Shown piece after piece: positions 44,848-50,598 of a DNA stretch of 64,000 nucleotides (within the stretch, counting starts at the first letter, position 1; every line of letters starts with the position of its first letter). Source of the stretch: Adineta vaga (Eukaryota > Animalia > Rotifera). The stretch is from contig CP075495.1 in assembly GCA_021613535.1 (NCBI GenBank), positions 1,240,001-1,304,000 of the forward strand, read 5' to 3'. The translations under genes and the position numbers were made by a program. The notes beneath the pieces were generated by a model. That model was given only the letters and a program-made list of their open reading frames with translations, made no database searches and was not told where the DNA came from.

Positions 44848-46781
44848 TTAACGAGAAAAAAATTCTAAATCACCGATAATTAAATCAATGATTTGATCGA
44901 AAGACATATTTGATTGATTATTATTATTATTGATAACAAAAAATTGCTTTTGATGAATTAATGAAGTTATATTAAACAAAACATATTGTTCAGGACGAAT
45001 TTTCGTTGACCAATATTCACTAATATCTAAATTACTTGCTCGTCGACTTAAATATAAATCACACATATGATCTGTTAAATTCTAAATTAAAAATCAAAAT
45101 TAACTAATCAAATAGAATTTAAATTTCATACTGAAATTGTTGGTGTAGAAATGTGAATAAACATCAATGGCCATTTCACTAGATTCATATCAGCAACAGT
45201 TACTTTTAATAGAACTTTACTTGATGTTGATCGTTCTGTTCGTAATGAATTTTCCAAACTCATACATGCACGACGATTCCATCCGCATTTATCATTTTGT
45301 GAAAATGGTAAAACCTTTTATTGAAAAAGCAAATTCCATAGAAAAAGATTGAAAGTTCTTTTTTTCCCTAAATAAACAAACAAACAAACTTGTGTAAGTG
45401 AACAGGCAAGTGCTTGAGCTGGTCGATCTGTAAATTGACTACTCAATGGTTGAATAAAATTCACATTTAATTCACCAATTTCACCACTATCAATAAATAT
45501 TAATTGAGCTTTTTCATTTCCAACAAGTCGAATAATTCTTCCACGATACCAATTCGTATCATTTGGTGATTTTGCAACACAAAAATCACCTGATTGAGGA
45601 AAATAACTTTTATTCATATCAATACTATTGTAATACAAACTAATCATGAAAAAAAACAATTATCCGCTAATTTTCATGAAGAGAAAAACAAAATTACTTG
45701 AGATTTTGATGCATTTCATCGTACGATTCCGTTTGATTAGAAATTCGAAGAAAGAAATAAGTTGGATTATAATATTTCGATAGTTCACCTTCGAAATCAA
45801 CGCCACTTTGAAAACGTTGATAAGTAATAGTGACAGGAACATTGTATTCAACTAGAAACGAAAGTTTTCTTCGTCGAAATTGATCAGAATCTTATATTTA
45901 CTTGGTCGAATTGGAATTTGAGTCGGAGGATAATAGTTATTCTCACGATTTGTTGTTGTTGGTTTTGTTCCATTAAATGTTCCTCGTCGATAATGTTGTT
46001 GTTGTTGTTGATGATGATGACTAGATGATGATGTTATTCCATTCGAAGGATTTTGTTCGATTTTCGGAATTGGTCGAATTAAATGAGTGTTATTTAGATT
46101 TGATGGATATGTTGGAGGAGATGGATTTTTATTTACATGTTGAGAAACTGTCGATGGTGATGAACAATTACTTATCGATGGAAATATTGGAGAAGGATTA
46201 TCCAAATGTAAATCATCAGTTAATTGATACTAAAATATAAAGGAAAATACAATTCATTATGCACGAAAAATTGACATTATCGAAAATATTACGTGAGCTT
46301 TGACAGCATTGATTGTTTCTTTAACTGTTTGAACTTCTTTACCAATTTCCACTTGAATATCTACAATTATAGATGAAATAAAAACGATTCATTTTTTCAT
46401 TAGAGATAAATAATCAAATGATTTTTTACGTTGAAGTAATTGTGCCCATTGTTGAAGAGAAGTATGAATAGATTCTAATGTAATTAAACCAACGACTTGT
46501 TGTTTCGATACTTTCGTTTGATATTGAAATGAATTCTCCATTTGTCGTGAAATCATTTGACCTTTGATAACATTATTATTTGTTGAAATGAATGAATCAG
46601 ATGATAAATCCAAATATTCATGAATTTGTTCATCAAATATTTGAATTAAATATTCACAATGATTTTTATCATCAATACCAAACGTTGATTTTATTTGATT
46701 TTCAAGTAAATCCACTTCAATTGGATGTCTTAAATCAAATTTTCGTCGTTGTCGACCAAATTCAATAACTAACGTTAACAT
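44848..46781 (-). CDS. Tudor domain-containing protein, multi-exon
   Basis: PQSGDFCVAKSPNDTNWYRGRI..FIDSGE..PAQALACSL extended Tudor motif. Joining of the upstream exons is inferred from splice sites. Confidence 0.7.
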
Positions 46782-47369
46782 TATCTATTCTTCTAATTTC
46801 TTTTCTAACTGATTTGAAATCGTTAGAAAGAACGACAAAAAGATTTGAATTTATGCTTATCTACGTTTAATCCAAACTGACCAACACGATATCATTTATT
46901 ACTTCTACTAATGACATCTATCAATTAAACAACATAATGTATCTCGGATCAAAAAGAAAAAGATACTATCAATGATCCGATCATAGAGAAGAAAGAAATA
47001 TCATTCGGTATACAATTGATTCACTTTTATGATAACACTTCTAACTTTCCGAGTCCCATCATCATCATCCCGTATCTTTTCGAGATTTTTTCAAAATCAT
47101 TGATTTTCTTGTTGAACAACATCCATTACATCGAAAACATATGAGATAGAAACCATATGGTCACTAAAGAACAATCAGAGAGTCAAAAAACATGAAAACG
47201 AAGATCTGGTTCTAAGAGAGAAGGATAATTTCAATGAACTAATGACTCTGTCTATCTCTCTCTCTCTCTGTGTTTGTTTCGACGTCCGACGTCATCGGTC
47301 AATCAATTTCTTTTCTCATTGAATATTCTTGTTAACACAAAGAGAGAGTGATCGGGCAAACGGTCATTT

Positions 47370-47512
47370 ATGAGTCATGACCAATGAATAACAATGACCT
47401 TGAACTTTGCCAATGAGAATAGTGTCTCTTCTTTCACCTTATATAAATTGATGTGTCTTCCAACATTAAATTACACAATTCAACAAACGGAGAAGAAAAT
47501 AAAAACAGTAAG
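47370..47512 (+). promoter_or_regulatory. Putative Pol II promoter and short first non-coding exon
   Basis: TGAGTCA (~47371), TGACCTTGAACT nuclear-receptor half-sites (~47395), TATATAAA (~47440) and a GTAAGT donor (~47507). No + strand CDS follows. Confidence 0.4.
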
Positions 47513-47523
47513 TTGAAATCTAT

Positions 47524-47606
47524 TCTTATTATGAAGACACTGTTCGTCTTGCCTCGCTAGTGAATCAAATTAAGCGAAGCCTGTCGGCCAGTTCCTTCTA
47601 ATAAGA
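47524..47606 (+). ncRNA. Candidate pri-miRNA hairpin 1
   Basis: Basal stem tcttatta/taataaga plus gaag/cttc. Arm ACTGTTCGTCTTGCCTCGCT pairs with AGCGAAGCCTGTCGGCCAGT. Confidence 0.55.
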
Positions 47607-47656
47607 TCTTTTGAATGTTTTCATCGATCAATTTCATTATTTCAATTGGGAAAATT

Positions 47657-47757
47657 GCGATTACACTGTTCACACACCTCGCGCAGTGATAAACTCTTTG
47701 TCTTATTTTAGACAAAGAGGCGACAAGTCCGCCAGATTGTGCGAACAGTCTAATTGC
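47657..47757 (+). ncRNA. Candidate pri-miRNA hairpin 2
   Basis: Basal stem gcgatta/taattgc, arm ACTGTTCACACA pairing with TGTGCGAACAGT, and a 10-bp apical stem ctctttgtct/agacaaagag. Confidence 0.5.
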
Positions 47758-47794
47758 TCATTCCAAATACCATCAGATAAAAAGTAACAAAATC

Positions 47795-47885
47795 AGACAC
47801 AAAGAAAAACTGTTCATCTAGCCTCGCCTGTGTATTTCTAATCTATTAAGGCGGGAGCAGGTTGTGACAGTCATTATATGTGTCT
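47795..47885 (+). ncRNA. Candidate pri-miRNA hairpin 3
   Basis: Basal stem agacaca/tgtgtct. Arm ACTGTTCATCTAGCCTCGCCT pairs with AGGCGGGAGCAGGTTGTGACAGT using several G-U pairs on the + strand. Confidence 0.55.
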
Positions 47886-47945
47886 ATGAACGTCGAAAAC
47901 AATGTCTTTATTTGTTTAAAAAACGAATGTAGCAAATTTTTAGAT

Positions 47946-48905
47946 TTAAACTTGTGCCATACGGATATAACCTTTGCCACTTGGAAGATCGTTTTTAACT
48001 TGAACACCTTGTGGAAAATATTTTTTTACGTCTTCATCTTTCACACTCGGTGGTACCATTACTTTGTCACCAACCTGAGAGAAGAAAAATTGTTTTCAAA
48101 GGAAACCCAACGGCTATATGTTTACCTTCCAGTCAACTGGTGTTGCAATGGGTAATCGAGCAGAAAGTTGTAATGAATCAAGTAAACGAAGGATTTCACT
48201 AGAAAAGAAATGCACTGTTTTTGTACTTTATTTGGAAATAAATTTACTCAAAATTTCTTCCAGTTGTTGCTGGATAAAGTAAACTTGCTTTTACTTTCTT
48301 ATCTTGTCCAATGAAGAAAACCTAATTAAATGAAAGATATATATATATTTATTGAATTAAATCAAAGAGAAACTAACTGCACGTGCTGTTAATGGTAAAC
48401 CTTTGTTATCGAATTCAGATGGATCGATCATTCCAAGTTGTACAGCTAATTTTCTATCACTATCATCAATAATTGGGAATGCAAAGTCACCATGTGGTAT
48501 TATTTTACATTTATCGCCTGAGCATTGAACATTTGGTCCTCCATATGCTTGTAAATCCTAGTTAGTTTCATACATTTGTAGAGAAAGTTTAGTTGAAATA
48601 AATAAATTACTTTGATCCATCCATGATGATTGTCAATAGAATCACATGATAAACCAATTAATTTTGTATTTCGTTTGGCAAATTCAGGAGCTAATTTAGC
48701 AGCACGTGAGAGTTCAGTTGTACATACTGGTGTATAGTCAGCTGGATGTGAAAATAAAATTCCCCAACTGAAAGATGAAAGTTTCGAATAGGATTAGAAA
48801 AGAAATTGAAACGAACCTGTCTCCAAGCCATTCATGTAATTGAATATCACCAACAGTGGTTTTCAATTGAAAATTTGGAAATTCATCACCTAATTTCAAT
48901 GACAT
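47946..48905 (-). CDS. PRDX6: 1-Cys peroxiredoxin (peroxiredoxin-6), 6 exons
   Basis: [48 protein letters not shown] and LPSGKGYIR after splicing. Confidence 0.95.
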
Positions 48906-49496
48906 TTTGTTCGTGGAGAAGAATTTAAAGTTCAAATGTCTAGAAGAGATATCGTCGAATGAAAAAACGTATAAATGGTTATGTCATATAAAGGATGAGA
49001 AAGAAAAACGCTTCGTCATACTTCAGTATGTCGAAAGCAAGGACACCTCTCGTATGCGGACGGCACAATGACATCTATTTATCAGAAAAGAAAAGCGTAT
49101 CGTTGTTCTTAATGGATTGTGAAGAAATAAAAAAAAGTGATAGGAGTGTGAGATAGTGAGTGATTCTTTTTTTTTCGAGTAACCTTTGATCAGACAGTGA
49201 CATATGATTATTATACATTCGTAAGATGTCGAAAACGAAAATGACTTCTTATTTTGAAATTTTGCCTTGCTATTATATAATTGAGTCAGATGATCTAAAC
49301 GTACTTTTGTTTTTTGGCCTTAACATACTTGAAATAATATCAGTAAAAAGATAAGAAAAATGTTATACATGCATTTCATTTTTATGATTCGAAAAGAAAA
49401 ATGATTTATGAGAAGAATACATCAATAAATGATGACCTGGAAGATTTCTTTAAAATACAAAATAAGATTAAATAAAATGAAAATTATTGGATGAAT

Positions 49497-50598
49497 TTAT
49501 CGTCGTTGATTTCCAGTTCCACCTGATCGTCGATGTGAATTCGTATCATTCTAATGAATGATGATCATATTTTCATATAGAAGAAAAAGAAAATCTTACA
49601 TTCATTTCTTGATTGGTGACTTGTAAATTATTAACACGTTTTTCCATAGTTGACATCCATTCAGTATACATTTGTTCCCAAGTTGCAATCTAAAACTAGA
49701 GAATATAGAAATAACAAATGAAATAAATCTTTACTTGTTTCTTTGCTTCTTCTTCTTGACGACATAATTCAGCCATTTTATCTGCATATTCTTTCTTCAT
49801 TTTCTCACAAGCATTCTAAGTGAGTATTGGTTTCTCGTGAAGATGAATTTATTCTTGTATGAATGAACTTACTTGATAATCTTGATTTTCTTTTTGTAAT
49901 TTATCACAGCGATTTTTAACATCGACTAATTGTGATTGTGCCAATGATAAATATCGTTCGACTGACTACATAAAAGAAATTTTCGAAGAAAATAACAATT
50001 GAAATAAATACAAGAGAAACCTCTTTAGCAGTTCGTTGTTCTTGTGTTTTCTTTTCTTGCGTCATCAGTTGATCCATTGTTTCTATATTATCTTCTTTTT
50101 GACGATCTAATAATTCTTGAGAAGTTGGACATTTCGGACAAGAAGCAGAAGTAGTTGTGGGCGGTGGTGCGGATTGTTTTTTTGCTACGTCTTTTAGTTC
50201 AATTTGTTTTTTTAATTGTAAATTCGACTTTTTTTCTGAATCTAGTATGCCTTCTAATTCGTCGCATCGATCACATTTCATTTTTTCAGTACGATTTGTT
50301 CTATGAATAACAAAAATCTTGCATAAAAGTTTATTCATAAGAAATAAAAACGAACCCGGCACCAGTTGCATTCACATATTCTTTTTCAGTTTTAACAACT
50401 GTTGTTGCCGCTTTTGCACGACGTAATTCTTCTACTTTGATTTTAAATTCATTAGATTGGCGTTCAAGCTGAAAATATACGAAAAGATAATAAATTATAA
50501 AGAATTCTTAAATTCACTTCAGCAATTCGATTTTTTAAACCAGGAATATCTTCTTTTGTTTTTCCTGTTTGTTGCATTGAACTTGTTGATGAACTCAT
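49497..50598 (-). CDS. Coiled-coil protein with CxxC motifs, multi-exon
   Basis: Heptad-rich exons (LKNRIAELERQSNEFKIKVEELRR), CDRC and CPKC motifs, canonical short introns. Confidence 0.6.

Follow-up and report, generated by a model that had tools for sequence, protein, structure and literature searches.

A conserved three-hairpin cluster in Adineta vaga as a probable polycistronic microRNA gene of a bdelloid-wide family

Three tandem hairpins in the genome of the rotifer Adineta vaga, lying beside a convergent peroxiredoxin gene, very probably constitute a polycistronic microRNA gene that would be transcribed on the + strand from its own TATA-containing Pol II promoter and that belongs to a bdelloid-wide family. 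The argument is built on sequence comparison, starting from a 64,000-nt stretch of contig CP075495.1 (assembly GCA_021613535.1, positions 1,240,001 to 1,304,000; hereafter the window, to which coordinates refer unless stated otherwise). The original prediction had read these hairpins as a microRNA family, and the folds, copy number, synteny, conservation pattern and covariation described here all support that reading. The elements of the locus are as follows:

47524-47606, + strand: hairpin 1, a pri-miRNA-like stem-loop, with the invariant 5' arm at 47538-47558 and the 3' arm at about 47573-47594
47657-47757, + strand: hairpin 2, with the invariant 5' arm at 47664-47684 and the 3' arm at about 47728-47751
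47795-47885, + strand: hairpin 3, with the invariant 5' arm at 47808-47829 and the 3' arm at about 47849-47873
47946-48905, minus strand: a 1-Cys peroxiredoxin (Prdx6-like) gene, a convergent neighbor that is context rather than part of the cluster

The motif ACTGTTC-N5/6-CCTCGC, on which the paralogy of the hairpins had been proposed, is present in the sequence with starts at 47539, 47665 and 47809, and each hairpin has its own basal stem (tcttatta/taataaga, gcgatta/taattgc and agacaca/tgtgtct, respectively), as had been described. The fold-backs are likewise real: on the + strand their energies are -28.9, -41.9 and -31.5 kcal/mol for hairpins 1 to 3, far beyond those of dinucleotide shuffles (z-scores of -5.1, -5.2 and -4.0), with only 0-1 of 200 shuffles folding as well as each hairpin. 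Their 21-27 consensus pairs per hairpin and internal loops of only 1-3 nt compare with the at least 16 bp between the arms and the lack of large internal loops expected of canonical microRNAs (Ambros 2003; Fromm 2015; both as summarized in the methods of PMC12256650). A perfect 10-bp apical stem-loop (47693-47721) sits inside the loop of hairpin 2; it occurs only in lineages with the window type of the cluster, is deleted in six contigs (L002, L018, L022, L030, L031 and L033) and is absent from those with the type found on contig 5, described below. A transcript lookup for a 58-aa open reading frame running across the cluster gave no record.

When metagenomes were scanned with a degenerate 19-nt pattern of the arm, 25 contigs matched. 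Of these, 18 carry the cluster with the hairpin order unchanged and thereby extend it to about ten further bdelloid-like lineages; the other seven (L011, L016, L017, L019, L021, L025 and L034) are chance matches, GC-rich and non-hairpin. Among the 11 distinct three-hairpin lineages, mean pairwise identity is distributed over the regions of the cluster as follows:

5' arms: 100% (hairpin 1), 98.4% (hairpin 2) and 100% (hairpin 3), all but one of the 64 columns being invariant
3' arms: 91-96%
lower stems: 72-91%, the differences including compensatory ones
loops: 50-58%, indels also occurring
spacers and leader: 33-40%

By hairpin, the invariant columns of the 5' arms number 21 of 21, 20 of 21 and 22 of 22 in these lineages, and it had been suggested that conservation of the arms next to Prdx6 in other rotifers should be sought: about 11 lineages indeed show arms far above loops and spacers, which is the phylogenetic pattern, arms above loop and flanks, asked of microRNA genes. 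The pairing is maintained across the same alignments, with 96.7% of cells paired over the 26 consensus pairs of hairpin 1 and 97.4% over the 27 of hairpin 3, the latter including three G-U wobbles conserved on the + strand, as against 25-49% when the partners are slid by 1-3 columns. Pairs changed on both sides are restricted to the lower stems, with four in hairpin 1 and one in hairpin 3; there is one further case at the base of the hairpin-2 duplex. This combination of invariant arms, covarying lower stems and freely varying loops is the signature of a microRNA precursor, and the alignments indicate that the arms are under strong purifying selection. One lineage (L013:10552-10811; also L014, L028 and L029) has only hairpins 1 and 3, hairpin 2 having been lost; its hairpin-1 5' arm carries a single C-to-T change, and the 3' arm of its hairpin 3 has been rewritten at about eight positions with the 5' arm identical.

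The same conservation profile bears on whether these could be unprocessed structured elements of another class, such as snoRNA-like RNAs, an array of regulatory stem-loops or cruciform DNA, which we regard as quite unlikely. Searching Rfam 15 over 46500-49000 at E-values up to 10 returned nothing over the hairpins, all matches having E > 2 and lying elsewhere; this speaks as little for a known microRNA as for a snoRNA, which lends such an explanation some room, and it also answers the suggestion that a match to an H/ACA snoRNA or other known RNA class be looked for, since none lies on the hairpins. However, the invariance is limited to 21-22-nt blocks on one arm while the loop varies freely, to the point of a whole apical stem being gained or lost within it, and a 7-nt motif at the 5' end shared across seven otherwise different paralogues (see below) resembles a seed family. 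H/ACA snoRNAs in particular have two hairpins with pseudouridylation pockets, an H box (ANANNA) and, 3 nt before their 3' end, an ACA. Here no ACA box follows hairpin 2 or 3, large internal pockets like those of H/ACA RNAs are lacking, and the AUAAGA after hairpin 1 lies in the paired basal stem rather than being single-stranded; together with the lack of an Rfam match, this led us to reject that identity.

The cluster in the window lies on contig 2. Searching the whole genome at the DNA level (100.8 Mb, six contigs) turned up a single further copy, 70% identical, on contig 5 (within G000:C5:15756500-15756950), where the ohnologous locus left by duplication is found. Over 24-28 nt the two copies agree completely in all three 5' arms; their 3' arms show a few differences, their loops have drifted apart, and the contig-5 copy lacks the apical stem of hairpin 2. 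The exact motif ACTGTTC-N5/6-CCTCGC has seven matches in the genome against none for the reversed control and a chance expectation, by our own composition estimate, of about 0.7; six of the seven fall within the two ohnologous clusters, and the remaining one (L006) does not form a hairpin. The presence, in intergenic DNA rich in A and T, of three inverted repeats that resemble one another might also bring to mind a decayed foldback transposon (MITE) or palindromes arrayed by chance. Yet the ohnologous copy stands alone in 100.8 Mb, the synteny is fixed across lineages, terminal repeats and target-site duplications are lacking, and strong purifying selection acts on the arms. Thus, the hundreds of dispersed copies named in the original prediction as a contrary outcome did not appear, the copies of the cluster being two and syntenic, and we hold that copy number and synteny have already refuted this explanation to the point that it merits virtually no credence.

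Looking beyond the locus, we searched with a covariance model built from hairpin 1 alone, since aligning the three paralogues jointly with MAFFT had misplaced the 3' arms. The model gave two weak matches, on contigs 3 and 6, both of which fold as good hairpins, and a relaxed motif search with local folding extended them to a second cluster of five hairpins spaced by 113-125 nt, with its own TATA box, present on the same two contigs:

contig 3 (L041), G000:C3 about 12548150-12548700, minus strand: second cluster
contig 6 (L045), G000:C6 about 2491080-2491680, plus strand: second cluster

The 5' arms of the second cluster are identical between its two ohnologous copies. In three of the five hairpins they open with ACUGUUC and in another with ACUGUAU, this one also having CCUCGC; the first hairpin of the cluster is unrelated, its 5' arm beginning UCACCGGU. 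Hence ACUGUUC is common to six of seven family hairpins, their 3' arms being without a common 5' end. By these comparisons, the family comprises at least seven paralogues in two copies each, that is, 14 predicted genes in two clusters, bdelloid-wide, and its 14 hairpins at four loci are not a dispersed repeat. The idea of a family of ACUGUUC hairpins thus stands as far as the shared seed goes, but the family is wider than the locus on which it was proposed, with four more members in the second cluster. Three genomic sites, L040, L043 and the above-mentioned L006, were rejected as members, being non-hairpin matches. A lone ACTGTTC...CCCCGC on the minus strand of contig 5 (L044; G000:C5:13358623-13358642) forms a weak foldback of -21 kcal/mol and is doubtful, being perhaps the relic of a former family member, perhaps a match by chance.

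The association with the peroxiredoxin gene is conserved. Its exons, searched separately, match AhpC-TSA (E = 6.8e-14) and 1-cysPrx_C, and such exons lie convergent just past hairpin 3 in nearly all orthologous contigs. The exception is L031 (L031:1-4466), where Prdx6 is absent downstream and its place is taken by another convergent gene, whose end lies some 80 nt away from hairpin 3; the gene after that resembles the window's open reading frame at 49916-50371. In a tree built from the DNA of the clusters, the window and the contig-5 copy fall into separate groups (support 82/86), which is consistent with the duplication having preceded the species splits and agrees with a bdelloid tetraploidy that predates the divergence of the families (Hur et al. 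2009, as cited in PMC8789304).

Upstream of the hairpins lies a predicted promoter of Pol II type; its parts, followed by two short motifs farther downstream, are:

47280-47480, + strand: the predicted promoter as a whole, its blocks being kept by the ohnologue and by each of the 11 other aligned lineages
47280-47301, + strand: a conserved block with a CRE-like GACGTC palindrome
47317-47331, + strand: a conserved TCATTGAATAT block
47381-47385 and 47410-47414, + strand: conserved CCAAT boxes
47440-47447, + strand: a conserved TATATAAA box
47471-47480, + strand: a conserved initiator-like TTACACAATT
47508-47513, + strand: a 5' splice-site-like GTAAGT in the short leader, about 35 nt past the predicted start
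47891-47894, + strand: a CNNC-type motif (CGTC), 18 nt past the predicted 3' end of the hairpin-3 duplex, taken up with processing below

The TATA element, CTTATATAAAT, is conserved, with the initiator-like sequence about 30 nt downstream, and together they predict a transcription start near 47473 on the + strand. Over about 200-250 bp, the promoter is conserved, block by block and in all lineages, nearly as strongly as the mature arms; it stays with the hairpins in the L013 lineage, where the upstream neighbor gene differs, and promoter and cluster alike are intact in L031 despite the replacement of Prdx6. Runs of T in the stretches separating the hairpins speak against Pol III, and with the TATA and initiator blocks kept alongside the hairpins, we read the whole as a Pol II unit. 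The distance from the predicted start to the base of hairpin 1 is only about 10-15 nt in some lineages, which we count against the microRNA-gene explanation. The leader's GTAAGT is conserved as GTARGT/GTAYGT in most lineages but is deleted in L024/L027, L022 and L013 and is therefore not essential; it could be a U1 binding site or the start of a real intron, and no splice acceptor to go with this donor-like motif was identified. Within the promoter there is also an unrecognized conserved 27-nt block, AGAGAGAGTGA-CGGGCAAA-GGTCA (47340-47366, + strand). A short (CT)n/(GT)n microsatellite lies directly upstream of the promoter at 47251-47271, and most lineages have a CT-rich tract at the matching place.

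That promoter is one of two grounds on which we assign the cluster to the + strand, the other being the asymmetry of G-U pairs, which had been said to favor this strand. Across the orthologues they do so: the + strand has 14 pair positions with 73 G-U cells in all, the minus strand four positions with seven. For the window alone the statement is only partly right, hairpins 1 and 2 being more stable on the minus strand. The consensus energies (+/minus) of -25.1/-25.0, -20.9/-25.4 and -27.3/-21.3 for hairpins 1 to 3 show that folding energy is by itself not decisive. It is here that an unlikely alternative has to be weighed, namely that the hairpins are transcribed on the minus strand, for example by read-through past the poly(A) site of Prdx6, and act either as microRNAs of the 3' arm with the seed GCGAGG or as Microprocessor-dependent terminators of Prdx6. 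The cluster begins only about 60 nt past the Prdx6 stop codon in a conserved convergent arrangement, the conserved arm when read in reverse also has a common 5' hexamer, and one pair of hairpin 2 runs through CG, CA and UA across lineages, a path that passes through a wobble on the minus strand only; we count this path and the greater minus-strand stability of hairpins 1 and 2 against a + strand microRNA gene. However, the 14 G-U positions of the + strand become C-A mismatches on the minus strand, with only four cases of the opposite, the conserved TATA/initiator promoter faces into the cluster on the + strand, a minus-strand AATAAA stands between Prdx6 and hairpin 3 in most lineages, and the lineage without Prdx6 (L031) keeps both cluster and promoter.

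The Microprocessor measures a stem of about 35 bp and cuts 13 bp from its basal junction, aided by UG, UGU/GUG and CNNC motifs. Counted in alignment columns, hairpins 1 and 3 have their basal junction at 3 and the start of the invariant block at 17 and 16, respectively, so that these 21-22-nt blocks start 13-14 nt above the stem base, and the arms are about 35 nt each; both figures match this ruler. We accordingly place the predicted mature 5' ends at 47538, 47664 and 47808. The earlier expectation had been of 5' ends near 47537-47540, 47663-47666 and 47807-47810, and the starts of the invariant blocks fall within 1-2 nt of it. The accessory motifs give a mixed picture. The CNNC, as CGTC or CGAC, is conserved in all lineages aligned, follows hairpin 3 only and may act as an SRSF3-type Microprocessor enhancer. 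A GUG at the apical junction is conserved in hairpin 2 only, UGU/GUG being absent or not conserved in hairpins 1 and 3, and no basal UG was seen or conserved in the hairpins; the want of a basal UG and of an apical UGU/GUG in hairpins 1 and 3 counts against the microRNA-gene explanation. We take the 5' arm to be the guide, with the seed ACUGUUC at positions 2-8, because the motif at its 5' end is shared and the 3' arms share no start; as both arms are highly conserved, this choice is not certain.

We therefore favor a scheme in which the transcription, cleavage sites, guide arm and target repression are inferred as follows. A TATA-containing Pol II promoter would start a + strand transcript near 47473 that carries the three stem-loops; in each of these, cleavage by the Microprocessor (Drosha/Pasha) would fall about 13 bp up from the basal junction, and the variable loop would be cut off by Dicer. 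Argonaute would then load the 5' arms at 47538-47558, 47664-47684 and 47808-47829 as guides sharing the seed ACUGUUC. Both clusters would each have been kept in the two copies left by the ancient bdelloid genome duplication.

The original prediction did not recognize the hairpins as a known family, and that holds in so far as Rfam offers no match; that they are new is doubtful, since the family is bdelloid-wide and is probably in MirGeneDB. MirGeneDB 3.0 curates 129 microRNA genes of A. vaga from small-RNA data (PMC11701709; PMC12256650), and we think it rather likely that the present cluster is already among them. One candidate is Mir-12598, a rotifer family with members P1-P7, mostly in a/b pairs, amounting to 13 genes in A. 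vaga (PMC12256650, supplementary file 1), whose read counts top those of all families in this species (PMC12256650, supplement). Its seven paralogues and 13 genes resemble in number, and in number only, the seven paralogues in two ohnologous copies, or 14 hairpins, found here; on this comparison by gene number, not sequence, we lean slightly toward the two families being one and the same. A literature search found neither the arm sequences nor the name Mir-12598, and the supplementary material to PMC12256650 and bioRxiv 2024.08.22.609214 lists names with counts but no sequences.

If the locus is what we take it to be, it changes nothing in microRNA biology, being an ordinary kind of gene that probably already figures in the curated set of the species. 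It does, nevertheless, offer a clearly bounded microRNA family whose mature ends are predicted precisely and a compact, very conserved promoter, along with natural replicates in the form of two ohnologues in about ten lineages, and might be used to study how microRNAs were retained once the bdelloid genome had duplicated and how promoters evolve in an animal that is asexual. A more far-reaching version, which we put forward tentatively and think on the whole improbable, is that the ACUGUUC family is bdelloid-specific and in no database, with 14 genes, one cluster of which has a 250-bp promoter conserved like mature microRNAs, and that the convergent overlap with Prdx6 predates the bdelloid radiation. 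Were the family indeed in no database and that overlap so old, it would hint at a role in the response to oxidative or desiccation stress.

Among individual microRNAs, the closest resemblance that we considered is to MIR-375 (UUUGUUCGUUCGGCUCGCG...), a microRNA of the 3' arm with the seed UUGUUCG. The 5' arm of hairpin 1 shares UGUUCGU and GC(C)UCGC with it; however, the conserved arm here is the 5' one, the seed differs at position 2 and the alignment needs an indel. With a conserved 5' arm, the seed ACUGUUC and no Rfam microRNA match, we regard the likeness as a chance resemblance and reject the identity. The single genomic site found with the MIR-375 pattern (L035) does not fold as a hairpin (z = +0.4), nor does any Rfam family match it.

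Canonical polycistronic microRNA clusters of animals include, for example, the mir-2 clusters of protostomes and the mir-279/mir-36 clusters. Like these, the Adineta cluster has tandem hairpins 110-145 nt apart with a common seed, conserved arms and variable loops; arms of about 35 nt, a lower stem of 13 nt and a Pol II promoter, here a predicted one; and a history of retention after whole-genome duplication. Unlike them, it has a seed, ACUGUUC, without an Rfam family, and a promoter that is unusually compact and conserved as strongly as the mature arms.
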